A stretch of DNA of 52,163 nt from Saccostrea cucullata (Eukaryota), in contig NW_026932781.1 in the NCBI RefSeq assembly GCF_032062105.1, positions 1 to 52,163 of the forward strand, written 5' to 3'. This document shows, one piece after another, positions 3,953 through 38,367 of this stretch. A program made the translations under genes and the position numbers. The first letter of the stretch is position 1; each line of letters begins with the position of its first letter. The notes under the pieces were generated by a model that saw only the letters and a list, made by a program, of their open reading frames with translations, searched no databases and had not been told where the DNA came from.

Positions 3953-6726
3953 TTATTTATTTGAAACTCTCTTCAGTTTTGTTTCGAAAGCCCTGAACGT
4001 ACGGAAAGGAATATTTGATTTTAAACACTGTAATTTAAAGTGTTCGTATTTTTGGTGAACGCTTATCTTCTCCAAGCTTTGAGCATGCAGGAATTCCAGC
4101 TCTTGTGCCGACCAGGGAGCTTTATAAGATGTGGAAATCGGGTAGCAGGAGGAAGTTCTCCGAAGTCCTATGTTTTTATCAAAAAGAATGGGGTCATCAT
4201 CGCGATCACCATATTCATCAGTGACATTTCCAGGTAGTTCTGCGACTTCCTGTTCTGTTTCCTTTCTCTCGTCCTTTTTGTTAGTTTTCTGTTCTTCTCC
4301 TGTCAATATTTCCAGTTTATGTGGGATTGTAAAGTGCAAGCGATTCAACTGCAAATTGCGGAATCTAAAATTGGCCAATTGTAACTTGGACAAAATCTCT
4401 AATGCAATCAACTTGTTCTTGTGTAAGGGTAGATCAGTCATAAGAACCACTAGCCTGTCATATTCAACGAAATGGCCCTGCATCAAAAGAGCAATACAGC
4501 TTATGAACGTCATTGTTATCACTGTTTGATCTCTCTTTTCAACTTTCGAAGACACATTGATACCCAGGGAAGTATCTTTGGTGTTTTCTTTATTTTGCTT
4601 GGATACACAAGGCCCCGTTTTTCGAGTTCACCTTTAACTAGATCAGATATTGTAATTAGTGTAGCTTCGGTGATATCTGTCGATTCTTTGTCATACACAA
4701 CCGCCCAAAACTTGTCCTTAAAGGACCAAGTAAGGGTCATGTTTCCATGTTTGTCGTATGTGGTCACCGCGGGAAAATGTTTAAGCTCCAGTTCCAGTAA
4801 TCCGGCCTCTATGATCTCTGCCAATGGAAGGTTACTTTTATCCAAAAGTAAGTTCAAGCTGGGAAAAACCATTTGGGCATTAGTTCTCCTGTTTGTTGTT
4901 AGCAGTTTTACTAGCGACTTGAGGGTTACAGCTCCTACTGTATTAAAAGTGGTCTTACAGGACTTCATCTGTCTTAGGAAATCTTCAAACAGAACATAAC
5001 TAGCCATCTTGCCAGTTTCGTGCAAGTCATGTAGTAAGGCAACGACCAGATGTCTACCAATAACTCCGTAGCTGCCATCCAAGTGATCGTGTAATCCCAC
5101 TGATCGTGTTATCATCTTACTTATAGCCTCAGATGTTGTCCATATTTCTGGTGGTGGAATACTATATTCGTTTTGCATACAGGTTGAGTACACTTCTAAA
5201 GATAGGAATCCAAAGTGGTCACTCACACTCCGACTGGGTCCAAGAGCGCCGGGTCCCAGATTTATTGAGTATGTTGTGCTCCTTCCACAAAGTGGTTTTC
5301 CCCACAACATTTTTTCTGAGGCTAGTTCTAACTGGTAGGATTGCCAGGTAGCAAGCACATTTCCTGTTTTCTGATACTCGTTCAAAAGTTCCTGAAGTTC
5401 CTTGCAAATCCATAAGCCCAAATGTCTAATGCATGTGAGAATTTGACTGGGAAAAGGCACCAACATAGGACAACTTTCTAACAGAAATTCAAGATTTGTT
5501 ATATCAATAAAATCCAAGGCATGCAAATGGTCTGCAACAGAATCCTGTGAGACGACAAATTCTATCCTACATGCACTTTTCCTCAGCAATGTCCAGTTAC
5601 TTTGTAATGTTGATATATAATGCTCTGCGTCACGTAGAAATGCTTCCGCTGTCGATCGTGGGAAACACATACCCCCAACAATGCAGCCAGACACTGGATG
5701 ATATCGTCCATTTGGTTGCCGGTGTGGAATGTCAGCATAAAGCTGTACAAATTGAACATCTTGTGGAAAACGACAAATCTTCATCAAACAATCTTTAACA
5801 TCCATTGCTCTGCCATCTAAATTGCTCTGATAATTACCGCAGTCTGTGAACGATAAGCAGCTACTTAGTGTTCCTCTGTGGCCAATAACTTGTTCCAAAC
5901 CTACTGTGGACCAAAGCAGATCAACGTCTTCACTGTCTGACAAAATGTTTCCGGCAACATGAATAGTTGTACGCAGTATTAATTCAGTAAAGAAATCTGA
6001 CAAGGATAGCCCACATGTCATTTTTTCACCAAATCTGAAGCAAAATATGATTGGTCTTAAAAATCCACTTTGAGGCAGTTCGTCTAAAGATGTTTGCAAT
6101 GCTTCGAGTATGGGACAACAGTCATCAGGTAAAATGAACATTTTTCGAGCGTCATTAATGTCATTCTTTTGCAGAGTTCTCGTTGCCTCCCCCCTCAAGG
6201 CAAGTGTCATTAGTGAAGTTTTAAAACTTTCCCTCAGCTGGAAAAAGGTGGCTAAGGTTTGTTGTCTTACTTGCTGCTTTGATAACGCAACTGAATGGAT
6301 TTGGTGCACAGGAATTAATCCTATCCAACATTCCCATCCCCTCTCATAGAATAATTGAAAGCCTAGGCTGTTTGAAAATGTCATGAGTTCGCTTTTACTA
6401 TACTGTGGTAATTTTATATGCTTTTTCAAAACGCTTCTAACATTCCGTAAACTGGCATGATCGTGGGGAAACAGAGTAATATGTCTCACTGGCATTCTAA
6501 TTGCTGTCAAAGATTTTAATTCCAAAACGCATCCATCAATATCGAATGAATATCTCAACCATACTTCTCTGTCTACTTCATCGACTGTCAAACATCTTCC
6601 ATAAATTCGTTCATCCCTTCTTAAAAAGAGTTGAGGTGTTTCAGATAAAGAATTGTATAGCTTTGCTAAATTAAAGTTCTCTTGCACGGTTTCAGAAAAA
6701 GTTTGTACACTTTCATCAACGTCCAT
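3953..6726 (-). pseudogene. 928-aa unknown protein, copy 1, frameshifted
   Basis: A 13-bp deletion (ccatgtccatttt) near 4530 relative to copies 2 and 3 splits the ORF into 735-aa and 200-aa pieces. It could be an assembly error. Confidence 0.8.
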
Positions 6727-8037: not shown

Positions 8038-11000
8038 TTTCAGGGTTTATGCAGGGTTATCCCTTTAAACTTCATATCTGGTGTTCATATTCGGGTTGTA
8101 AGCTAAGTAGGAACCCTAACCCTAACCCTAACCCTAACCCTAACCCTAACCCTAACTCTAACCCTAACCCTTATTTTCATGGTTTCTGCAGGGTTATCAC
8201 TTTAAACTTCATATCTGGTGTTCATATTCGGGTTGTAAGCTAACGAGTGATGTTCAATCGAATGAACCCTCAACCCTGCCCGAACCCGGAAGTTAAAGAG
8301 TCAACCCTGAGTTAACCCTGATTTTCAGGGTTGTTGCAGGGTTATCCCTTTAAACTTCATATCTGGTGTTCATATTCGGGTTATAAGCTAAGGAGGTGAT
8401 GTTCAATCCAGAAACCCCTCAACCCTGCCCGAACCCGGAAGTTAAAGGGTCAACCCTGAGTTAACCCTCATTTTCAGGGTTTATGCAGGGTTATCCCTTT
8501 AAACTTCATATCTGGTGTTCATATTCGGGTTGTAAGCTAAGTAGGTAATGTTCAATCCAAAAAACCCTCAACCCTTCCCGAACCCGGAAGTTAAAGGGTC
8601 AACCCTGAGTTAACCCTGATTTTCAGGGGTTATGCAGGGTTATCCCTTTAAACTTTAAACCCTGATTTTTAGGGTTTATTCAGGGTTATCCCTTTAAACT
8701 TCATATGGTTCAATCCAAACAACCCTCAACCCTTCCCGAACCCGGAAGTTAAAGGGTCAAACCTGAGTTAACCCTGATTTTCAGGGTTTATGCAGGGTTA
8801 TCCCTTTAAACTTCATATCTGGTGTTCATATTTGGGTTGTAAGCTAAGTAGGTGATGGTTGATCGATTGACCCCTCAACCCTTCCCGAACCCGGAAGTTA
8901 AAGGGTCAACCCTGAGTTAACCCTGATTTTCAGGGTTTCTGCAGGGTTATCCCTTTAAACTTCATATCTGGTGTTCATATTCGGGTTGTAAGCTTAGTAC
9001 GTGATTGTTGATAGATTGACCCCTCAACCCTTCCCGAACCCGGAAGTTAAAGGGTCAACCCTGAGTTAACCCTGATTTTCAGGGTTTATGCAGGGTTATC
9101 CCTTTAAACTTCATATCTGGTGTTCATATTCGGGTTGTAAGCTAAGTAGGTGATGGGTTGTCAAGAACCCGGAAGTTAAAGGGTCAACCCTGAGTTAACC
9201 CTGATTTTCAGGGTTCAGGGTTATCCCTTTAAACTTCAATCTGGTGTTCATACGGGTTGTAAGCCTCAACCCTTCCCGAACCCGGAAGTTAAAGGGTCAA
9301 CCCTGAGTTAACCCTGATTTTCAGGGTTTATGCAGGGTTATCCCTTTAAACTTCATATCTGGTGTTCATATTCGGGTTGTAAGCTAAGTAGGTGATGTTG
9401 ATCAAAAAACCCTCAACCCTTCCCGAACCCGGAAGTTAAAGGCTCAACCCTGAGTTAACCCTGATTTTTAAGGTCCATTCAGGGTTATCCCTTTAAACTT
9501 CATATCTGGTGTTCATATTTGGGTTGTAAGCTAAGTAGGTGATGGTTGGTCGATTGACCTCTCAACCCTGCCCGAACCCGGAAGTTAAAGGGTCAACCCT
9601 GAGTTAACCCTGATTTTCAGGGTTTATGCAGGGTTATCCCTTTAAACTTCATATCTGGGTTATCCCTTTAAACTTCATATCAATGGTGTTCATATTCGGG
9701 TTGTAAGCTAAGTAGGTAAGTATCCCTTTAAACTTCATATCTGGTGTTCATATTCGGGTTGTAAGTTAAGTAGAGGATGCTTAATTGATTGACCCCTCAA
9801 CCCTTGCCGAACCCGGAAGTTAAAGGGTCAACCCTGAGTTAACCCTGATTTTCAGGGTTTATGCAGGGTTATCCCTTTAAACTTCATATCTGGTGTTCAT
9901 ATTCGGGTTGTAAGTTAAGTAGGTGATGGTTGTGACCCTCAACCCTGCCCGAACCCGGAAGTTAAAGGGTCAACCCTGAGTTAACCCTGATTTTCAGGGT
10001 TTATGCAGGGTTATCCCTTTAAACTTCATATCTGGTGTTCATATTCGGGTTGTAAGCTAAGTAGGTGATGGTTGATCGATTGACCCCTCAACCCTTCCCG
10101 AACCCGGAAGTTAAAGGGTCAACCCTGAGTTAACCCTGATTTTTAGGGTCCATTCAGGGTTATCCCTTTAAACTTCATATCTGGTGTTCATATTCGGGTT
10201 GTAAGCTAAGTAGGGGATGGTTGATCGATTGATTCCTCAACCCTTCCCGAACCCGGAAGTTAAAGGGTCAACCCTGAGTTAACCCTGATTGTCAGGGTTT
10301 ATGCTGGGTTATCCCTTTAAACTTCATAGCTAGTGTTCATATTCGGGTTGTAACTTAAGGAGATGATGTTCAATCGAATGAACCCTCAACCCTGCCCGAA
10401 CCCGGAAGTTAAAGGGTCAACCCTGAGTTAACCCTGATTTTCAGGGTTTATGCAGGGTTATCCCTTTAAACTTCATATCTGGTGTTCATATTCGGGTTGT
10501 AAGCTAAGGAGGTGATGGTTGATCGATTGACCCCTCAACCCTTCCCGAACCCGGAAGTTAAAGGGTCAACCCTGAGTTAACCCTGATTTTTAGGGTCCAT
10601 TCAGGGTTATCCCTTTAAACTTCATATCTGGTGTTCATATTTGGGTTGTAAGCTAAGTAGGTGATGGTTGATCGTTTGACCCCTCAACCCTGCCCGAACC
10701 CGGAAGTTAAAGGGTCAACCCTGAGTTAACCCTGATTTTTTCAGGGTTTATGCAGGGTTATCCCTTTAAACTTCATAGCTGGTGTTCATATTCGGGTTGT
10801 AACTTAAGGAGATGATGTTCAATCGAATGAACCCTCAACCCTGGCCTAACCCGGAAGTTAAAGGGTCAACCTTGAGTTAACCCTGATTTTCAGGATTTAT
10901 GCAGGGTTATCCCTGTAAACTTCATATCTGGTGTTCATATTCGGGTTGTAAGCTAATGAAGTGATGGTTGATCGATTGACCCCTCAACCCTTCCCGAACC

Positions 11001-11926
11001 CGGAAGTTAAAGGGTCAACCCTGAGTTAACCCTGATTTCTAGGTTCCATTCAGGGTTATCCCTTTAAACTTCATATCTGGTGTTCATATTTGGGTTGTGA
11101 GCTATATCCCTTTAAACTTCATATCTGGTGTTCATAGTTGTGATCGATGTTCAATCCAAAAAACCCTCAACCCTTCCCGAACCCGGAAGTTAAAGGGTCA
11201 ACCCTGAGTTAACCCTGATTTTCAGGGTTTATGCAGGGTTATCCCTTTAAACTTTATAGTTAGTGTTCATATTCGGGTTGTAACTTAAGGAGATGATGTT
11301 CAATCGAATGAACCCTCAACCCTGGCCCAACCCGGAAGTTAAAGGGTTTACCCTGAGTTAACTCTGATTTTCAGGGTTTATGCAGGGTTATCCCTTCAAA
11401 CTTCATATCTGGCGTTTATATTCGGGTTGTGAGTTAAGATGATGATGTTCAATCGAATGAACCCTCAACCCTACCCCAACCCGGAAGTTAAAGGGTTAAC
11501 CCTGAGTTAACCCTGATTTTCAGGGTTGAACCAGGGTTATCCTTTTAAAGTTCATATCTGGTGTTCATATTAGGGTTGTAAGTTAAGGAGATGATGATTA
11601 ATGGATTGAACCCTCAACCCTTCCCAAAACCGGAAGTTAAGGGGACAACCCTGAGTTAACCCTGATTTTCAGGGTTGAACCAGGGTTATCCCTCTAAACT
11701 TCATATCTGATGTTCATCTACGGGTTGTAAGTTAAGGAGAAGTTAAAGGGTCAACCCTGAGTTTACCCTGATTTTTAGGGTCCTTCGACGGTTATTCCTT
11801 TAAACTTCATATCTGGTGTTTATATTTGGGTTGTTATATAAGTAGATATAAGTAGATGATGTTTAATAGAATGAACCTCAAGCCTTCCCGAACCCAGAAT
11901 TTAAATGGATGAGTCCGAGTTTACCC
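8038..11926. repeat. 149-bp satellite array, copy 2
   Basis: Same monomer as 1-970; several monomers are truncated or garbled. Confidence 0.95.
8112..8171 (+). repeat. Telomeric (CCCTAA)~10 tract inside the satellite
   Basis: aaccctaaccctaaccct... with one ctctaa variant. Confidence 0.9.
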
Positions 11927-12850
11927 TTTCTTGAAGTCTTCGTCCAGTTTTATCTCCTTAAACCTCATATGTCTTGTTCTGATTGGGGTTGAATGATAGT
12001 TATACCAAGTCCATTTGCATGAGTTTTTAAATCTATCCAAATGCGGAAGTGTAAGGAATAACCTTGATGTAGCCCTTTTTTCAGTCTTCGTTTTCTTGTT
12101 AATATTTTGTTCATCATTCTTAACTTCATATGTATCGTTAATATTCTAAAGTCATAATAATAGATAATGTTCAATTAATTGAGCCCTAAGAAATGTTAAA
12201 TCCTTATGTTTTCAGATGTCTTATGTCTTGATATCTGCTTATTGTAATTGATTTTTAATATAATTAATTATCATACCAATTCTGCCCAGAGGCATGAAGT
12301 TCAAATTGTCATACAGAGTAAACCCTTATTGTAGAATTTATTCAGGTAATTTACTATCACATAATATCTGGAAAAAGAATTTTTTGACCCAATTTAACAG
12401 AAAAGTCAATGCAACCTAAAAAATCAGAATTAAATTGTAATCCGAATATTTAATTCATGCACCTTTGCATTTTTGGGGGGTTAAAAATAAACAACTGTTT
12501 CATATAAAAATCATTTATTTATTTATTTTTCAATCTGTGCTATGATCATTTTTTTAATATTCCTTATTAAAAAGTACACAGCAAAACATGCAATTCAGTG
12601 ATTATCTTACAAACTTGCTGTCAAATGACAGAATGATCTGACAAAATACGAGAAAAATATCAATTAAGTCCATAATACAAGAATTGAAACGATTCACATT
12701 TATTTATATCAATTTAAGCCATTAATTTTTAACCTTGTCATTAAACAACCCATCATGAATTACAGACTTTCACATATAATTGTGAAATAATAATAATGAA
12801 AACTTAGAAGAATTCTTTTCACAATTAACGCTTCTCAATTTTGCCAATGT

Positions 12851-13647
12851 TCATTTTAGACTATCTCCCACCAGCTCTTCAAGTTCCTTCTGGAGTCTTG
12901 CTTTCTCTCTTTGCGCTCTTTTCTTCTTCACGATATTTTTCACCTTCTCTTGTAAATAGAGTGCAAAATCGCCCTTAATGTCCGGCTTCCACTCTGGGGC
13001 CCAAATTCTATCCCGCACTCCCTCCTCGATCAGTTTTTGGATATCCACCAATTTTGCTATTTAACACGAAATAACAGTTAACTTTTTCAAAATACTTTAT
13101 AACAAGGGAATTATTCAAAAACGTCAGCCAACACAATCATTTTTATTCTCATTAATTAATATCCTTTCCCGTTAATCTACAGAGAATATGTTATACTTAC
13201 TTGGTGTATTTGTCTCCTGCCCCTACCCAATAATGGATATATGCAAGCTGAAGTTGGCTGACTTTCTCTTTCTCTGGACGGTAGGTGATGCCCTCTAATA
13301 CTTCCTCGACTTTCTCTCGCATGTCTTCTTTCAAATCATCCACCGACAAGGCAACTTCTTCTTCTTCCTCCTCCTCCTCACTCTCCTCTTCTATTAACTT
13401 TCTTTTAACTCCCTTTCCGGACTCAACTTCACTTTCTAGGGTCTCCACCCTGACTTTAACTTCTTTCAATTCATTACTAAACTTTACCATAGTCTCCATA
13501 ACGAATTCTCGCAAACCTTCATACTTTGCGTCGTTTTCATCTATCAAAATGAAAATGGTATGTGAAGTTAAAATATGCTTGCTATAGAAAATATCTTTCC
13601 AGAAACATGTAAACTACAATACCTTCTGATAGATTTCCTTTCTCCAT
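12851..13647 (-). pseudogene. Small spliced gene, copy 2, frameshifted
   Basis: A 2-bp deletion near 13220 (ctcctgcccctacc versus ctcctgcacccctacc) shifts the frame before the last intron. Confidence 0.7.
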
Positions 13648-14906
13648 ACTTCTTTTACAAGACGAATGACAAATCTGTAATACAAGTGAACATCGCAAAA
13701 TAATTGGAAAAACAAATTTGTGGGAAGATATTATAATTTCATAAAACCAAAACATACTAATCTTATGTATAATAGGAGTTTTATTGTCTTATCTTTGAAG
13801 GTCTATACATACTCAATAATTACACCTTCATTCACAAATAACTATTTATTTGAAGCTGCTCAGAGAGAACCAAATACTAAATTTTGCAGCCCATAAAAAT
13901 TAATTCTTACCTCTAAGAATTGCTTTCAATTTAAAGGATCCTAATTCTTGTACGGAAATAGCCGTCCACACTATAGGAGTGACAAGGTACAAATGACTGC
14001 AGCTAGCTGTGTCAACGTTAGCGCGCGCTCTGAGTGATGGGAAAGCGCACTTCACACCCCTTTGTGTATTGTGAATTCACAAGCTCAGCGTTCTTAGGTA
14101 AGTGTTTGCAGCTGTCAAATTCTAGAGTCCAGTCTTGTCCTGTAATGCATTTAGAGTTAGGGAAAACATATTATGGTGAACGTTCTAAAATATAAAACAA
14201 TTTTTGTAAAACGAACAACACTTTTGACATAGGTTTTTTTGTGTGTTATTTATTTATGCTTTATTCGCAGACAAAGACTTATTCCTGCGAATTTAAACCT
14301 TCTGATAAAATATAAAATGCGTTCAACAATTCAGCGTATTCTCTCTAGGGGAATTTAACGGATTTTGTGATTTTGTGAAAATATGATCCCGATAAAATAA
14401 TCATTCCTTGGGGTAAATGGATGTTCTTAATCACTTCCTTGGGTTACTTTACTAAAAATTGTTATTTTCTTTCTAAATAGATATTTGGAATCAGCTTCGA
14501 CAGAATATATTATGTTATGCAGTTTTCAATTTTATTAATTAAGAAACATGACTTAAGTAACTTTTCGATAAATGTTTAATATGTAAATATAAGTCAAAAG
14601 GTTCTGAATCGGATTTAACGCAAAATTATGTAATCTGATACGAAATAAATTGGAAAAACTCTCATGACCTTTATTAATTTCATATGTAGACATTGCAAAT
14701 ATTCATAACATCAGACATTTCATCAGTAATAAATTATTATAGGTCAACAACTGTTAAATGTTAAAAAAAACAATTCATAAATGTTTTTTTTTTGTATCAT
14801 CTCGAATTATCTCTCTAACTCCTACATTTCCGTCCAAAACTGTTATATCTTCTGACTTGAGAAAGTTTATAAAAGCGTCAAAACATTTCGGTGTGTTTAA
14901 ATGTGC

Positions 14907-17693
14907 TTATTTATTTGAAACTCTCTTCAGTTTTGTTTCGAAAGCCCTGAACGTACGGAAAGGAATATTTGATTTTAAACACTGTAATTTAAAGTGTTCG
15001 TATTTTTGGTGAACGCTTATCTTCTCCAAGCTTTGAGCATGCAGGAATTCCAGCTCTTGTGCCGACCAGGGAGCTTTATAAGATGTGGAAATCGGGTAGC
15101 AGGAGGAAGTTCTCCGAAGTCCTATGTTTTTATCAAAAAGAATGGGGTCATCATCGCGATCACCATATTCATCAGTGACATTTCCAGGTAGTTCTGCGAC
15201 TTCCTGTTCTGTTTCCTTTCTCTCGTCCTTTTTGTTAGTTTTCTGTTCTTCTCCTGTCAATATTTCCAGTTTATGTGGGATTGTAAAGTGCAAGCGATTC
15301 AACTGCAAATTGCGGAATCTAAAATTGGCCAATTGTAACTTGGACAAAATCTCTAATGCAATCAACTTGTTCTTGTGTAAGGGTAGATCAGTCATAAGAA
15401 CCACTAGCCTGTCATATTCAACGAAATGGCCCTGCATCAAAAGAGCAATACAGCTTATGAACGTCATTGTTATCACTGTTTGATCCATGTCCATTTTCTC
15501 TCTTTTCAACTTTCGAAGACACATTGATACCCAGGGAAGTATCTTTGGTGTTTTCTTTATTTTGCTTGGATACACAAGGCCCCGTTTTTCGAGTTCACCT
15601 TTAACTAGATCAGATATTGTAATTAGTGTAGCTTCGGTGATATCTGTCGATTCTTTGTCATACACAACCGCCCAAAACTTGTCCTTAAAGGACCAAGTAA
15701 GGGTCATGTTTCCATGTTTGTCGTATGTGGTCACCGCGGGAAAATGTTTAAGCTCCAGTTCCAGTAATCCGGCCTCTATGATCTCTGCCAATGGAAGGTT
15801 ACTTTTATCCAAAAGTAAGTTCAAGCTGGGAAAAACCATTTGGGCATTAGTTCTCCTGTTTGTTGTTAGCAGTTTTACTAGCGACTTGAGGGTTACAGCT
15901 CCTACTGTATTAAAAGTGGTCTTACAGGACTTCATCTGTCTTAGGAAATCTTCAAACAGAACATAACTAGCCATCTTGCCAGTTTCGTGCAAGTCATGTA
16001 GTAAGGCAACGACCAGATGTCTACCAATAACTCCGTAGCTGCCATCCAAGTGATCGTGTAATCCCACTGATCGTGTTATCATCTTACTTATAGCCTCAGA
16101 TGTTGTCCATATTTCTGGTGGTGGAATACTATATTCGTTTTGCATACAGGTTGAGTACACTTCTAAAGATAGGAATCCAAAGTGGTCACTCACACTCCGA
16201 CTGGGTCCAAGAGCGCCGGGTCCCAGATTTATTGAGTATGTTGTGCTCCTTCCACAAAGTGGTTTTCCCCACAACATTTTTTCTGAGGCTAGTTCTAACT
16301 GGTAGGATTGCCAGGTAGCAAGCACATTTCCTGTTTTCTGATACTCGTTCAAAAGTTCCTGAAGTTCCTTGCAAATCCATAAGCCCAAATGTCTAATGCA
16401 TGTGAGAATTTGACTGGGAAAAGGCACCAACATAGGACAACTTTCTAACAGAAATTCAAGATTTGTTATATCAATAAAATCCAAGGCATGCAAATGGTCT
16501 GCAACAGAATCCTGTGAGACGACAAATTCTATCCTACATGCACTTTTCCTCAGCAATGTCCAGTTACTTTGTAATGTTGATATATAATGCTCTGCGTCAC
16601 GTAGAAATGCTTCCGCTGTCGATCGTGGGAAACACATACCCCCAACAATGCAGCCAGACACTGGATGATATCGTCCATTTGGTTGCCGGTGTGGAATGTC
16701 AGCATAAAGCTGTACAAATTGAACATCTTGTGGAAAACGACAAATCTTCATCAAACAATCTTTAACATCCATTGCTCTGCCATCTAAATTGCTCTGATAA
16801 TTACCGCAGTCTGTGAACGATAAGCAGCTACTTAGTGTTCCTCTGTGGCCAATAACTTGTTCCAAACCTACTGTGGACCAAAGCAGATCAACGTCTTCAC
16901 TGTCTGACAAAATGTTTCCGGCAACATGAATAGTTGTACGCAGTATTAATTCGGTAAAGAAATCTGACAAGGATAGCCCACATGTCATTTTTTCACCAAA
17001 TCTGAAGCAAAATATGATTGGTCTTAAAAATCCACTTTGAGGCAGTTCGTCTAAAGATGTTTGCAATGCTTCGAGTATGGGACAACAGTCATCAGGTAAA
17101 ATGAACATTTTTCGAGCGTCATTAATGTCATTCTTTTGCAGAGTTCTCGTTGCCTCCCCCCTCAAGGCAAGTGTCATTAGTGAAGTTTTAAAACTTTCCC
17201 TCAGCTGGAAAAAGGTGGCTAAGGTTTGTTGTCTTACTTGCTGCTTTGATAACGCAACTGAATGCATTTGGTGCACAGGAATTAATCCTATCCAACATTC
17301 CCATCCCCTCTCATAGAATAATTGAAAGCCTAGGCTGTTTGAAAATGTCATGAGTTCGCTTTTACTATACTGTGGTAATTTTATATGTTTTTTCAAAACG
17401 CTTCTAACATTCCGTAAACTGGCATGATCGTGGGGAAACAGAGTAATATGTCTCACTGGCATTCTAATTGCTGTCAAAGATTTTAATTCCAAAACGCATC
17501 CATCAATATCGAATGAATATCTCAACCATACTTCTCTGTCTACTTCATCGACTGTCAAACATCTTCCATAAATTCGTTCATCCCTTCTTAAAAAGAGTTG
17601 AGGTGTTTCAGATAAAGAATTGTATAGCTTTGCTAAATTAAAGTTCTCTTGCACGGTTTCAGAAAAAGTTTGTACACTTTCATCAACGTCCAT
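14907..17693 (-). CDS. 928-aa protein of unknown family with Myb/SANT-like C-terminus, copy 2 (intact)
   Basis: 2787-nt uninterrupted ORF in AT-rich DNA. Copy 4 differs by many synonymous changes. The C-terminus WSAQELEFL...RTFRAFETKLKR resembles a Myb fold. Confidence 0.9.
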   Translation of the reverse strand: MDVDESVQTFSETVQENFNLAKLYNSLSETPQLFLRRDERIYGRCLTVDEVDREVWLRYSFDIDGCVLELKSLTAIRMPVRHITLFPHDHASLRNVRSVLKKHIKLPQYSKSELMTFSNSLGFQLFYERGWECWIGLIPVHQMHSVALSKQQVRQQTLATFFQLRESFKTSLMTLALRGEATRTLQKNDINDARKMFILPDDCCPILEALQTSLDELPQSGFLRPIIFCFRFGEKMTCGLSLSDFFTELILRTTIHVAGNILSDSEDVDLLWSTVGLEQVIGHRGTLSSCLSFTDCGNYQSNLDGRAMDVKDCLMKICRFPQDVQFVQLYADIPHRQPNGRYHPVSGCIVGGMCFPRSTAEAFLRDAEHYISTLQSNWTLLRKSACRIEFVVSQDSVADHLHALDFIDITNLEFLLESCPMLVPFPSQILTCIRHLGLWICKELQELLNEYQKTGNVLATWQSYQLELASEKMLWGKPLCGRSTTYSINLGPGALGPSRSVSDHFGFLSLEVYSTCMQNEYSIPPPEIWTTSEAISKMITRSVGLHDHLDGSYGVIGRHLVVALLHDLHETGKMASYVLFEDFLRQMKSCKTTFNTVGAVTLKSLVKLLTTNRRTNAQMVFPSLNLLLDKSNLPLAEIIEAGLLELELKHFPAVTTYDKHGNMTLTWSFKDKFWAVVYDKESTDITEATLITISDLVKGELEKRGLVYPSKIKKTPKILPWVSMCLRKLKREKMDMDQTVITMTFISCIALLMQGHFVEYDRLVVLMTDLPLHKNKLIALEILSKLQLANFRFRNLQLNRLHFTIPHKLEILTGEEQKTNKKDERKETEQEVAELPGNVTDEYGDRDDDPILFDKNIGLRRTSSCYPISTSYKAPWSAQELEFLHAQSLEKISVHQKYEHFKLQCLKSNIPFRTFRAFETKLKRVSNK

Positions 17694-17810
17694 CTGAAAT
17701 TAGAAAAACATTGTTTTTAGAATGGTACTCTTTGCAAAAGATGTAAAATCCAGAAAAAATTCATGTGCTGAAAATTATACTAACAATATCAAAAAATCCT
17801 GCATAAAAAT

Positions 17811-18302
17811 AACCCTGGGTTAAACCCGTGTATATTCTGGGTTAGACTTGGGTTTATCCTGGGTTAGACCCGGGTATATCCTGGATTATACCTGGGTTAT
17901 ACCCAGGTATATCCTGGGTTATACCTGGGTATCTCTCGGGTTATACCCGGGTTAATCCTGGGTTATACCCGGGTTTATCCTGGGTTATACCCGAGTATAT
18001 CTTGGGTTATACCCGGGTTTATCCAGGGTTAAACCCAGGTATATCTCGGGTTATACCCGGGTTAATCCTTGGTTATACCCGGGTTTATCCTGGGTTATAC
18101 CCGGGTTTATCCTGGGTTATACCCGGGTTTATCCTGGGTTAAACCCAGGTATATCTTGGGTTAAACCCGGGTATACCTGGGGTTTAAACCGGGGTATACC
18201 TAGGGTACCCGGGTTACCCGGGTATACCCGGGGTTAACCCGGGTATACCTAGGGTATACCCGGGTTAAACCCGGGTATACCAAGGGTATACCTGGGTATA
18301 CC
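17811..18302. repeat. 11/22-bp palindromic minisatellite, copy 2
   Basis: Same unit as copy 1, different copy number. Confidence 0.95.
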
Positions 18303-18771
18303 ACTGGTGTTCATACCCAGCATGATTTTAATTTTAATCAATGACCTTAATTTCAATCAATATGCTCTTATTGTATAATTAAAAGGAATATATCATAATT
18401 ACTTATTGAAAATACACTTTTATTTACCAGGTATAACTGAAAAATACAAAAAATATACATAAACTTTGTCCTTTTAAACACAAATAATTCAATATACTTT
18501 CGTAAATTTTGAATGCTAAAATAAGGCAAAGTTATGCATAACTTCTAAAAAAAGATGTCGTTGTTTTCTCAAAAAACACATAATAATTAGCAATTAAAAA
18601 AAATCAATTGAAATATTACCTTAGATTAAGAAAATCACCCATTAAATACACCACAGTATATAAGCGTCTGAATCGAAAGAAATCCAGCAACAAAATACCT
18701 ACTTTCACAATAAAATGATTGACAATCACGTGATAAAATAGGCGGAGTTCCGCATTCCCGCACCCGCATCA

Positions 18772-25749: not shown

Positions 25750-28536
25750 TTATTTATTTGAAACTCTCTTCAGTTTTGTTTCGAAAGCCCTGAACGTACG
25801 GAAAGGAATATTTGATTTTAAACACTGTAATTTAAAGTGTTCGTATTTTTGGTGAACGCTTATCTTCTCCAAGCTTTGAGCATGCAGGAATTCCAGCTCT
25901 TGTGCCGACCAGGGAGCTTTATAAGATGTGGAAATCGGGTAGCAGGAGGAAGTTCTCCGAAGTCCTATGTTTTTATCAAAAAGAATGGGGTCATCATCGC
26001 GATCACCATATTCATCAGTGACATTTCCAGGTAGTTCTGCGACTTCCTGTTCTGTTTCCTTTCTCTCGTCCTTTTTGTTAGTTTTCTGTTCTTCTCCTGT
26101 CAATATTTCCAGTTTATGTGGGATTGTAAAGTGCAAGCGATTCAACTGCAAATTGCGGAATCTAAAATTGGCCAATTGTAACTTGGACAAAATCTCTAAT
26201 GCAATCAACTTGTTCTTGTGTAAGGGTAGATCAGTCATAAGAACCACTAGCCTGTCATATTCAACGAAATGGCCCTGCATCAAAAGAGCAATACAGCTTA
26301 TGAACGTCATTGTTATCACTGTTTGATCCATGTCCATTTTCTCTCTTTTCAACTTTCGAAGACACATTGATACCCAGGGAAGTATCTTTGGTGTTTTCTT
26401 TATTTTGCTTGGATACACAAGGCCCCGTTTTTCGAGTTCACCTTTAACTAGATCAGATATTGTAATTAGTGTAGCTTCGGTGATATCTGTCGATTCTTTG
26501 TCATACACAACCGCCCAAAACTTGTCCTTAAAGGACCAAGTAAGGGTCATGTTTCCATGTTTGTCGTATGTGGTCACCGCGGGAAAATGTTTAAGCTCCA
26601 GTTCCAGTAATCCGGCCTCTATGATCTCTGCCAATGGAAGGTTACTTTTATCCAAAAGTAAGTTCAAGCTGGGAAAAACCATTTGGGCATTAGTTCTCCT
26701 GTTTGTTGTTAGCAGTTTTACTAGCGACTTGAGGGTTACAGCTCCTACTGTATTAAAAGTGGTCTTACAGGACTTCATCTGTCTTAGGAAATCTTCAAAC
26801 AGAACATAACTAGCCATCTTGCCAGTTTCGTGCAAGTCATGTAGTAAGGCAACGACCAGATGTCTACCAATAACTCCGTAGCTGCCATCCAAGTGATCGT
26901 GTAATCCCACTGATCGTGTTATCATCTTACTTATAGCCTCAGATGTTGTCCATATTTCTGGTGGTGGAATACTATATTCGTTTTGCATACAGGTTGAGTA
27001 CACTTCTAAAGATAGGAATCCAAAGTGGTCACTCACACTCCGACTGGGTCCAAGAGCGCCGGGTCCCAGATTTATTGAGTATGTTGTGCTCCTTCCACAA
27101 AGTGGTTTTCCCCACAACATTTTTTCTGAGGCTAGTTCTAACTGGTAGGATTGCCAGGTAGCAAGCACATTTCCTGTTTTCTGATACTCGTTCAAAAGTT
27201 CCTGAAGTTCCTTGCAAATCCATAAGCCCAAATGTCTAATGCATGTGAGAATTTGACTGGGAAAAGGCACCAACATAGGACAACTTTCTAACAGAAATTC
27301 AAGATTTGTTATATCAATAAAATCCAAGGCATGCAAATGGTCTGCAACAGAATCCTGTGAGACGACAAATTCTATCCTACATGCACTTTTCCTCAGCAAT
27401 GTCCAGTTACTTTGTAATGTTGATATATAATGCTCTGCGTCACGTAGAAATGCTTCCGCTGTCGATCGTGGGAAACACATACCCCCAACAATGCAGCCAG
27501 ACACTGGATGATATCGTCCATTTGGTTGCCGGTGTGGAATGTCAGCATAAAGCTGTACAAATTGAACATCTTGTGGAAAACGACAAATCTTCATCAAACA
27601 ATCTTTAACATCCATTGCTCTGCCATCTAAATTGCTCTGATAATTACCGCAGTCTGTGAACGATAAGCAGCTACTTAGTGTTCCTCTGTGGCCAATAACT
27701 TGTTCCAAACCTACTGTGGACCAAAGCAGATCAACGTCTTCACTGTCTGACAAAATGTTTCCGGCAACATGAATAGTTGTACGCAGTATTAATTCGGTAA
27801 AGAAATCTGACAAGGATAGCCCACATGTCATTTTTTCACCAAATCTGAAGCAAAATATGATTGGTCTTAAAAATCCACTTTGAGGCAGTTCGTCTAAAGA
27901 TGTTTGCAATGCTTCGAGTATGGGACAACAGTCATCAGGTAAAATGAACATTTTTCGAGCGTCATTAATGTCATTCTTTTGCAGAGTTCTCGTTGCCTCC
28001 CCCCTCAAGGCAAGTGTCATTAGTGAAGTTTTAAAACTTTCCCTCAGCTGGAAAAAGGTGGCTAAGGTTTGTTGTCTTACTTGCTGCTTTGATAACGCAA
28101 CTGAATGCATTTGGTGCACAGGAATTAATCCTATCCAACATTCCCATCCCCTCTCATAGAATAATTGAAAGCCTAGGCTGTTTGAAAATGTCATGAGTTC
28201 GCTTTTACTATACTGTGGTAATTTTATATGTTTTTTCAAAACGCTTCTAACATTCCGTAAACTGGCATGATCGTGGGGAAACAGAGTAATATGTCTCACT
28301 GGCATTCTAATTGCTGTCAAAGATTTTAATTCCAAAACGCATCCATCAATATCGAATGAATATCTCAACCATACTTCTCTGTCTACTTCATCGACTGTCA
28401 AACATCTTCCATAAATTCGTTCATCCCTTCTTAAAAAGAGTTGAGGTGTTTCAGATAAAGAATTGTATAGCTTTGCTAAATTAAAGTTCTCTTGCACGGT
28501 TTCAGAAAAAGTTTGTACACTTTCATCAACGTCCAT
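25750..28536 (-). CDS. 928-aa unknown protein, copy 3 (intact)
   Basis: Translation matches copy 2 in the ORF track. Confidence 0.9.
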   Translation of the reverse strand: MDVDESVQTFSETVQENFNLAKLYNSLSETPQLFLRRDERIYGRCLTVDEVDREVWLRYSFDIDGCVLELKSLTAIRMPVRHITLFPHDHASLRNVRSVLKKHIKLPQYSKSELMTFSNSLGFQLFYERGWECWIGLIPVHQMHSVALSKQQVRQQTLATFFQLRESFKTSLMTLALRGEATRTLQKNDINDARKMFILPDDCCPILEALQTSLDELPQSGFLRPIIFCFRFGEKMTCGLSLSDFFTELILRTTIHVAGNILSDSEDVDLLWSTVGLEQVIGHRGTLSSCLSFTDCGNYQSNLDGRAMDVKDCLMKICRFPQDVQFVQLYADIPHRQPNGRYHPVSGCIVGGMCFPRSTAEAFLRDAEHYISTLQSNWTLLRKSACRIEFVVSQDSVADHLHALDFIDITNLEFLLESCPMLVPFPSQILTCIRHLGLWICKELQELLNEYQKTGNVLATWQSYQLELASEKMLWGKPLCGRSTTYSINLGPGALGPSRSVSDHFGFLSLEVYSTCMQNEYSIPPPEIWTTSEAISKMITRSVGLHDHLDGSYGVIGRHLVVALLHDLHETGKMASYVLFEDFLRQMKSCKTTFNTVGAVTLKSLVKLLTTNRRTNAQMVFPSLNLLLDKSNLPLAEIIEAGLLELELKHFPAVTTYDKHGNMTLTWSFKDKFWAVVYDKESTDITEATLITISDLVKGELEKRGLVYPSKIKKTPKILPWVSMCLRKLKREKMDMDQTVITMTFISCIALLMQGHFVEYDRLVVLMTDLPLHKNKLIALEILSKLQLANFRFRNLQLNRLHFTIPHKLEILTGEEQKTNKKDERKETEQEVAELPGNVTDEYGDRDDDPILFDKNIGLRRTSSCYPISTSYKAPWSAQELEFLHAQSLEKISVHQKYEHFKLQCLKSNIPFRTFRAFETKLKRVSNK

Positions 28537-35579: not shown

Positions 35580-38367
35580 TTATTTATTTGAAACTCTCTT
35601 CAGTTTTGTTTCGAAAGCCCTGAACGTACGGAAAGGAATATTTGATTTTAAACACTGTAATTTAAAGTGTTCGTATTTTTGGTGAACGCTTTTCTTCTCC
35701 AAGCTTTGAGCATGCAGGAATTCCAGCTCTTGTGCCGACCAGGGAGCTTTATAAGATGTGGAAATCGGGTAGCAGGAGGAAGTTCTCCGAAGTCCTATGT
35801 TTTTATCAAAAAGAATGGGGTCATCATCGCGATCACCATATTCATCAGTGACATTTCCAGGTAGTTCTGCGACTTCCTGTTCTGTTTCCTTTCTCTCGTC
35901 CTTTTTGTTAGTTTTCTGTTCTTCTCCTGTCAATATTTCCAGTTTATGTGGGATATGTAAAGTGCAAGCGATTCAACTGCAAATTGCGGAATCTAAAATT
36001 GGCTAATTGTAACTTGGACAAAATCTCTAATGCAATCAACTTGTTCTTGTGTAAGGGTAGATCAGTCATAAGAACCACTAGCCTGTCATAATCAACGAAA
36101 TGGCCCTGCATCAAAAGAGCAATACAGCTTATGAACGTCATTGTTATCACTCTTTGATCCATGTCCATTTTCTCTCTTTTCAACTTTCGAAGACACATTG
36201 ATACCCAGGGAAGTATCTTTGGTGTTTTCTTTATTTTGCTTGGATACACAAGGCCCCGTTTTTCGAGTTCACCTTTAACTAGATCAGATATTGTTATTAG
36301 TGTAGCTTCGGTGATATCTGTCGATTCTTTGTCATACACAACCGCCCAAAACTTGTCCTTAAAGGACCAAGTAAGGGTCATGTTTCCATGTTTGTCGTAT
36401 GTGGTCACCGCGGGAAAATGTTTAAGCTCCAGTTCCAGTAATCCGGCCTCTATGATCTCTGCCAATGGAAGGTTACTTTTATCCAAAAGTAAGTTCAAGC
36501 TGGGAAAAACCATTTGGGCATTAGTTCTCCTGTTTGTTGTTAGCAGTTTTACTAGCGACTTGAGGGTTACAGCTCCTACTGTATTAAAAGTGGTCTTACA
36601 GGACTTCATCTGTCTTAGGAAATCTTCAAACAGAACATAACTAGCCATCTTGCCAGTTTCGTGCAAGTCATGTAGTAAGGCAACGACCAGATGTCTACCA
36701 ATAACTCCGTAGCTGCCATCCAAGTGATCGTGTAATCCCACTGATCGTGTTATCATCTTACTTATAGCCTCAGATGTTGTCCATATTTCTGGTGGTGGAA
36801 TACTATATTCGTTTTGCATACAGGTTGAGTACACTTCTAAAGATAGGAATCCAAAGTGGTCACTCACACTCCGACTGGGTCCAAGAGCGCCGGGTCCCAG
36901 ATTTATTGAGTATGTTGTGCTCCTTCCACAAAGTGGTTTTCCCCACAACATTTTTTCTGAGGCTAGTTCTAACTGGTAGGATTGCCAGGTAGCACACACA
37001 TTTCCTGTTTTCTGATACTCGTTCAAAAGTTCCTGAAGTTCCTTGCAAATCCATAAGCCCAAATGTCGAATGCATGTGAGAATTTGACTGGGAAAAGGCA
37101 CCAACATAGGACAACTTTCTAACAGAAATTCAAGATTTGTTATATCAATAAAATCCAAGGCATGCAAATGGTCTGCAACAGAATCCTGTGAGACGACAAA
37201 TTCTATCCTACATGCACTTTTCCTCAGCAATGTCCAGTTACTTTGTAATGTTGATATATAATGCTCTGCGTCACGTAGAAATGCTTCCGCTGTCGATCGT
37301 GGGAAACACATACCCCCAACAATGCAGCCAGACACTGGATGATATCGTCCATTTGGTTGCCGGTGTGGAATGTCAGCATAAAGCTGTACAAATTGCACAT
37401 CCTGTGGAAAACGACAAATCTTCATCAAACAATCTTTAACATCCATTGCTCTGCCATCTAAATTGCTCTGATAATTACCGCAGTCTGTGAACGATAAGCA
37501 GCTACTTAGTGTTCCTCTGTGGCCAATAACTTGTTCCAAACCTGCTGTGGACCAAAGCAGATCAACGTCTTCACTGTCTGACAAAATGTTTCCGGCAACA
37601 TGAATAGTTGTACGCAGTATTAATTCGGTATAGAAATCTGACAAGGATAGCCCACATGTCATTTTTTCACCAAATCTGAAGCAAAATATGATTGGTCTTA
37701 AAAATCCACTTTGAGGCAGTTCGTCTAAAGATGTTTGCAATGCTTCGAGTATGGGACAACAGTCATCAGGTAAAATGAACATTTTTCGAGCGTCATTAAT
37801 GTCATTCTTTTGCAGAGTTCTCGTAGCCTCCCCCCTCAAGGCAAGCGTCATTAGTGAAGTTTTAAAACTCTCCCTCAGTTGGAAAAAGGTGGCTAAGGTT
37901 TGTTGTCTTACTTGCTGCTTTGATAACGCAACTGAATGCATTTGGTGCACAGGAATTAATCCTATCCAACATTCCCATCCCCTCTCATAGAATAATTGAA
38001 AGCCTAGGCTGTTTGAAAATGTCATGAGCTCGCTTTTACTATACTGTGGTAATTTTATATGTTTTTTCAAAACGCTTCTAACATTCCGTAAACTGGCATG
38101 ATCGTGGGGAAACAGAGTAATATGTCTCACTGGCATTCTAATTGCTGTCAAAGATTTTAATTCCAAAACGCATCCATCAATATCGAATGAATATCTCAAC
38201 CATACTTCTCTGTCTACTTCATCGACTGTCAAACATCTTCCATAAATTCGTTCATCCCTTCTTAAAAAGAGTTGAGGTGTTTCAGATACAGAATTGTATA
38301 GCTTTGCTAAATTAAAGTTCTCTAGCACGGTTTCAGAAAAAGTTTGTACACTTTCTTCAACGTCCAT
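35580..38367 (-). pseudogene. 928-aa unknown protein, copy 4, frameshifted
   Basis: A 1-bp insertion near 35955 (gggatatgtaaa versus gggattgtaaa) gives an 807-aa product that lacks the Myb-like tail. Confidence 0.8.

Follow-up and report, generated by a model that had tools for sequence, protein, structure and literature searches.

A candidate telomere-targeted mobile element in Saccostrea cucullata that encodes a putative TBP-fold tyrosine transesterase

How do near-identical units, each with a single large protein, come to lie head to tail against telomeric repeats in Saccostrea cucullata? The stretch that we analysed, which we call the window, is contig NW_026932781.1 of assembly GCF_032062105.1 (positions 1 to 52,163, or 52,163 nucleotides). 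It contains a unit of about 10.8 kb in four head-to-tail copies (99.3-99.97% identity outside the satellites). On the minus strand, each unit runs from its proximal end through a 22-bp minisatellite, the open reading frame (ORF) for a 928-amino-acid protein, and a small spliced second gene to a 149-bp satellite. The initial annotation, which was made from the letters alone, suggested that the protein may be a divergent, non-HUH tyrosine transesterase resembling the Rep_trans initiators. We propose that the unit is an autonomous DNA mobile element that targets telomeres, and that it is mobilised by the 928-aa protein, acting as a metal-dependent tyrosine transesterase of TBP fold and not as an HUH enzyme. 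On balance, we think that this proposal is the probable explanation.

The innermost copy is the most diverged of the four, and copies 1 and 4 have frameshifts (Table 1). The unit-unit junctions in the window are Ns, which we kept unfilled. Telomeric repeats adjoin these junctions with their G-rich strand on the minus strand, so the array is oriented towards the left end of the contig.

The fixed end of the element is fused to the G-rich telomeric strand. At loci from other genomes, a TTAGGG tract leads straight into the unit, whose start is mostly 0.1-2 kb upstream of the ORF, and the terminus has the form TA[TA]A[GA]G, then a short spacer, and then CGA[AG]ATG or similar. Among distal tract flanks, 10 of 34 distinct ones had this pattern; among proximal flanks, 0 of 42 did. 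(The analysis left out G000:C3086, which is an identical copy, and the masked junctions of the window.) Because the pattern itself was drawn from tract flanks, the independent check is a scan of this genome, which gave 139 sites, as compared to 0 in the control. In the window, units that lack the ORF have readable termini at 41845, 41325, and 41241, and every one of these is immediately preceded by a telomeric tract of its own. The termini of this type in the genome, of which there are at least 139, are probably a large non-autonomous subtelomeric compartment. Many of them are evenly spaced at about 3.6, 3.9, 4.8 or 5.1 kb (range 3.6-5.1 kb). Sequence related to the ORF-less units at 39860-41845 is also found in contigs G000:C18121 and C1101 of the same genome. 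A universal subterminal hairpin lacks support: it is clear in about half of 10 termini and absent in the others.

The distal end is ragged, as neighbouring units stop at different points in a satellite, and two copies are truncated within the ORF with telomeric repeats immediately after. These ends bear on another route, in which the same enzyme nicks two successive termini to give unit circles with a telomeric tract, which undergo rolling-circle replication and reinsert by homologous recombination. Circles of yeast Y' elements reinsert in this way. The near-identical tandem units would fit, as would the identical distal junctions that some arrays share, and circle formation is the usual activity of Rep_trans proteins (PMC4797284). 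However, neighbouring units differ in tract length as well as in distal end points, different families alternate with each at its own tract, and the truncated copies are capped directly by repeats. We consider this route to be unlikely.

Besides this genome, the named hosts are Magallana angulata, Magallana gigas, Ruditapes, Mya, Mytilus, and four teleosts. This genome alone has at least six subfamilies (28-100% identity), which are placed in at least four separate spots on the tree; most have intact ORFs and several are tandem. Seven loci are on megabase contigs. Five of these have a contig end within 70 kb and an ORF that points outward; the sixth is on a 71-Mb chromosome, 0.42 Mb from its start; and the seventh is a degraded fish copy that is interstitial. 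At a catfish locus, tandem copies with a related terminus lie between telomeric tracts, and the ORF points inward. That the family is a telomeric mobile element is well supported.

Several other loci have features of their own. In the subfamilies at G000:C13018, C21039, and catfish L142, the ORF points inward and so opposes the G-rich strand, an arrangement that one Paramecium Helitron clade also has. In Mya arenaria (L001, 7411-7767 and 19752-22108), the repeats that flank the copy are of a variant type, TGACCC in place of TAACCC. G000:C15673:1371-34688 contains a 16-kb inverted duplication that includes the ORF and is either real or a chimeric assembly. Three homologues (P0040, P0090, and P0097) are filed at NCBI as metagenome or as a metagenome-assembled genome of a clam symbiont (Ca. 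Thiodiazotropha), and are most likely contamination with host DNA.

What kind of protein does the element encode? The five motifs noted at first (SFDIDG at 60-65, FGEK at 232-235, RTTIHVAGN at 252-260, FVQLYADIPH at 326-335, and CRIEFVV at 386-392) are at those residues, and the codon for Y330 is indeed at 16706-16704. There are 48 near-full-length relatives in a 90% database and 446 in a 50% library. We counted conservation over 127 aligned homologues, with denominators that vary by position. The residues whose invariance was to be checked held up: D62 is conserved in 96/96, D64 in 94/96, Y330 in 119/119, and R387 and E389 in 115/116 each. H256 is also invariant (112/112). This conservation goes beyond chance: just 21 polar positions of the entire protein are conserved at 95% or above, these six are among them, and all six are on beta-strands of the predicted model. 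In a comparison of the ORF with the M. angulata copy, dN/dS (nonsynonymous over synonymous divergence) is 0.099/0.794 (0.12).

Parts of the original motif reading need revision. RTTIHVAGN was viewed as an RxDxAxD-like strand with His and Asn in place of Asp. H256 is invariant and the position of A258 is A or G in 113/114 homologues, but R252 (26/110) and N260 (29/114) are not conserved, and the residue in the register of the Rep_trans Arg is not R252 but T254 (S/T/C). The conserved FGEK is not one of the Rep_trans motifs. A likeness to RxYxK around the Tyr does not hold either, as the flanking residues are Q328 (116/118) and D332 (103/119) instead of Arg and Lys. We also dropped a reverse-transcriptase (RT) reading of "YAD", which came with neither an RT fold nor a Pfam signal.

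Weak covariation places the strand of R387-x-E389 antiparallel to the Tyr strand, although with 176 sequences the covariation is too noisy to fix the topology of the sheet. This covariation and the alternation of residues on the same face are consistent with a single site on the concave face of the predicted sheet that is shared by the D, H, Y, and E residues. The invariant set also bears on whether the protein has any catalytic role. It could be cargo that binds DNA in the manner of a transcription factor, with a TBP-like sheet, a cyclin-like bundle, and a Myb/SANT module, and the spread of the units could need nothing beyond recombination at subtelomeres and healing by telomerase. But D, D, H, Y, R, and E are catalytic in type, and recombination leaves unexplained why one conserved terminus, in the same repeat phase, is found across distant genomes and ORF-less families. 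We think that non-catalytic cargo is improbable.

The AlphaFold 2 model of the 928-aa protein has high scores (predicted local distance difference test, 93.5; predicted template modelling score, 0.93). For the N-terminal domain, RepSTK1 ranked first of 48,161 structures, and ranked first again in a second comparison. It was also the only match to cover this domain of the full model, among the matches listed. No HUH structures were among the structural matches of the model. Searching with Foldseek against the pdb and viral sets gave only insignificant PP2C-type rows (template modelling score of about 0.1), and the ESM Atlas, searched by features or by shape, gave no family match. Might the match to RepSTK1 reflect only a large curved sheet, so that the element's enzyme has another chemistry or an unrelated fold, such as a His/Asp hydrolytic nuclease? 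The low Z score, the lack of Foldseek support, and the additional conserved His and Glu would agree with this. On the other side, the match runs end to end over the domain (5-370 of the model and 1-251 of the chain) and has about double the length of any other match beyond the TBP/Rep_trans group, and the invariant Tyr is in the expected strand order. We consider another chemistry or fold to be very improbable. We are fairly confident that the N-terminal domain has a TBP/Rep_trans-like fold, and the protein is likely to be an active tyrosine transesterase.

Sequence searches did not link the 928-aa protein to any known family. It had no match in Pfam, PHROGs, or the sequences in PDB, and no relatives in viral contigs. 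Among the listed families, there was no match to Rep_trans (PF02486) in 113 members at E up to 10, and DUF7845 (PF25227, Rep-Arvir) was absent from the Pfam matches of the protein and its homologues. Alignment with hhalign to 43 pT181-family Reps and RepSTK1 gave a probability of 0.1%, with a shallow profile (effective number of sequences of about 2). The suggestion of a divergent, non-HUH relative of Rep_trans is partly supported, by the order of the residues and the similarity of the predicted fold, but a profile match is lacking, as are RxDxAxD and RxYxK.

Could the units be passengers that are mobilised in trans? The candidates are endonuclease-less Penelope-like elements (Athena/Terminon) and HUH elements that resemble Helitrons or Helentrons, such as the telomeric Helitrons of Paramecium. 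Athena and Terminon are telomeric retroelements. Subterminal hairpins, where present, would fit, and a strictly polar attachment to telomeric repeats, along with satellites, is a feature of both classes (PMC13085455 for Helitrons). However, we recognised no RT, HUH, helicase, or DDE ORFs in about 45 loci that we scanned (other long ORFs had only weak matches of coiled-coil type), and there is no Rfam ribozyme in the window. The strand of H256 has just one invariant His, which is not the HUH motif, and there is no helicase ORF. The link between ORF and terminus persists at a protein identity of about 29% and in the fish copies, and the Paramecium Helitrons insert with the opposite polarity. We doubt that the units move in this way.

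How might the element's own enzyme move it? In elements that move by tyrosine strand transfer, the enzyme delivers the 5' phosphate of one end to the target 3'-OH, and that end is the precise one (PMC9371924 for Rep_trans/MOBT; PMC13085455 for Helitrons), and Rep_trans/MOBT enzymes cleave CT'AA and perform strand transfer (PMC9371924). The junction, from the telomeric G-strand's 3' end to the 5' end of the element, has the polarity to be expected of transfer to a telomeric overhang or to a nick in TTAGGG. We somewhat favour a one-ended route. The protein would bind the terminus and nick the G-rich strand where repeat meets element or right beside that junction (GGG-T-ATAGG). This junction is loosely like the Rep_trans nick site CT'AATAG, which we take as a lead only. 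Y330 would remain on the 5' phosphate of the element, with the metal held by D62 (D64), H256, and E389. Strand-displacement synthesis by the host from the freed 3'-OH would peel the strand towards the chromosome end, and the protein would join the element's 5' end to a telomeric 3'-OH, at the overhang or at its own nick in TTAGGG. There would be no fixed terminator: the distal end would break or run off, and telomerase would cap it. Repeated additions and ordinary subtelomeric recombination could then give polar arrays with some units amplified.

Table 1. Features of the window and of the 928-aa protein
Feature	Positions	Strand	Basis or comment
Unit 2, readable part (both junctions N)	8038..18771	-	Proximal end to 149-bp satellite
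ORF copy 1, frameshift near 4531	3953..6726	-	Unit 99.7% identical
ORF copy 2 (928 aa), intact; sole large protein of the element	14907..17693	-	ORF list and translation
ORF copy 3, intact	25750..28536	-	Unit 99.97% identical
ORF copy 4, innermost and most diverged, frameshift near 35950	35580..38367	-	Unit 99.3% identical
22-bp palindromic minisatellite, upstream of ORF	17814..18318
149-bp satellite with many telomere-like words, distal end of unit	8038..11834
Telomeric tract, proximal to innermost unit	39601..39857	-	G strand on minus
ORF-less units, same terminus type as ORF units	39860..41845	-	2 pattern matches, 0 expected by chance
Second gene, spliced; product small, charged, probably coiled-coil	12851..14031	-	RNA contig joints 13540/13623 and 13674/13911, GT-AG ends
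Curved beta-sheet domain (aa 52-428), putative TBP/Rep_trans-like topology; putative tyrosine transesterase	16410..17540	-
D62 and D64, first strand (57-70), candidate metal ligand (RepD D46)	17502..17510	-	Equivalence from strand order only
H256, at position of RepD D142	16926..16928	-	Invariant
Y330, predicted nucleophile, counterpart of RepD Y191	16704..16706	-	Strand 324-331; role inferred
R387-x-E389 (RepD R212-x-E214)	16527..16535	-	Conservation; weak covariation
Helical bundle (aa 681-810), unassigned; weakly like the cyclin folds of TFIIB/Brf and like prenyl synthases	15264..15653	-
Three-helix Myb/homeodomain-like helix-turn-helix (aa 868-928); candidate DNA-binding module	14910..15092	-

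The second gene has two GT-AG introns within one RNA contig, and a homologue is annotated in M. angulata; searched exon by exon, its product has no Pfam family. Most of the 928-aa ORF is covered by RNA contigs from two runs. Raw reads from adult RNA are sparse: they come to 57 in 12.8 million records and lie on both strands. An RNA end at 17695 is compatible with a splice acceptor ahead of the ATG, but its letters did not map within the window, and we set it aside. The TBP-like sheet, the Brf/TFIIB-like bundle, and the Myb-like tail recall parts of TFIIIB, with scores that are not significant.

On the inner side of the array are a LINE (long interspersed nuclear element) and a gypsy integrase. 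The LINE-like element (42077-46913, plus strand) has NADAR, APE, and RT domains and begins right after a telomeric tract at 41840-41998. The Gypsy-type ORF (47855-50250, minus strand) encodes an integrase and protease and has a SCAN-domain ORF ahead of it.

We found no description of this element in the literature (Repbase was outside our search), and the homologous proteins are annotated as uncharacterized. The element is apparently undescribed. We consider the element to be well supported and the enzyme assignment to be moderately supported; its novelty is provisional on the predicted fold and activity. The TBP-like fold of these enzymes is known only from bacteria and, newly, archaea (PMC13107129, April 2026). 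There is perhaps an even chance that the units represent a new class of eukaryotic transposon, with the first eukaryotic transesterases of TBP fold (Rep_trans/Rep-Arvir) and the first use of this fold by a transposase, whose one-ended transfer to the telomeric G-strand builds the subtelomeres of bivalves and some fish and possibly lengthens chromosome ends alongside telomerase. To our knowledge, the known eukaryotic rolling-circle transposons all use HUH enzymes. If the proposal is true, then a eukaryotic branch would complete the three domains for this enzyme fold and bring in a further chemistry of transposition. The proposal would account for a large subtelomeric compartment that has no annotation (at least 139 termini in this genome, and many "uncharacterized" genes of oysters and mussels), and it predicts an enzyme for attaching single-stranded DNA to the ends of telomeres.

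Among known systems, the best structural match is to Rep_trans (PF02486: RepC/RepD of pT181/pC221, RepSTK1, and MOBT relaxases), and the HUH motif is absent from both. The invariant D, H, Y, and RxE are on strands in the order of D46, D142, Y191, and R212-E214 of RepD (PMC4797284). By strand order, and with catalysis predicted, the two share an invariant Tyr on the second-last strand, followed by an RxE strand, and an acidic residue on strand 1. In place of RxDxAxD (R140, D142, A144, and D146), the protein has [STC]-x-H-x-[AG]-x-variable, which keeps only the small residue, and Gln and Asp replace R189 and K193 of RxYxK. It also differs from Rep_trans in having no sequence or profile similarity and in its large insertions and 500-aa C-terminal part. 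It is eukaryotic, chromosomal, and telomere-bound, whereas Rep_trans is on plasmids, phages, or integrative and conjugative elements. The T-A context of the Rep_trans nick loosely resembles the element's junction. Archaeal Rep-Arvir, which gives no signal in sequence, has the same fold; the context of its Tyr is different, and its counterpart of D142 is dispensable (PMC13107129). The common features are a TBP-like fold (predicted here) that is visible only in structure, a divergent Tyr context, tolerance of change at D142, and an appended helix-turn-helix. However, Rep-Arvir (DUF7845) belongs to circular viruses and plasmids of archaea, its winged-helix domain is central, and a match to PF25227 is absent here.

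HeT-A/TART, TRAS/SART, Athena/Terminon, and yeast Y' also form polar tandem arrays at chromosome ends, between or in telomeric repeats. They encode reverse transcriptase or helicase, neither of which we found in the units. Helitrons and Replitrons differ in having an HUH Rep (plus a helicase in Helitrons) and two defined ends. The telomeric Helitrons of Paramecium insert in the C-rich strand with their start inward. The fixed end of the present element is instead joined to the G-rich strand, and it points outward. The element is not a Helitron, a Replitron, or a retroelement, and its protein is Rep_trans-like by prediction but falls outside that family. In lifestyle, the Paramecium telomeric Helitron clade is the closest analogue: as here, its members are found only at chromosome ends, with telomeric flanks, fixed polarity, internal satellites, an ORF in either orientation, and many ORF-less derivatives (PMC13085455).
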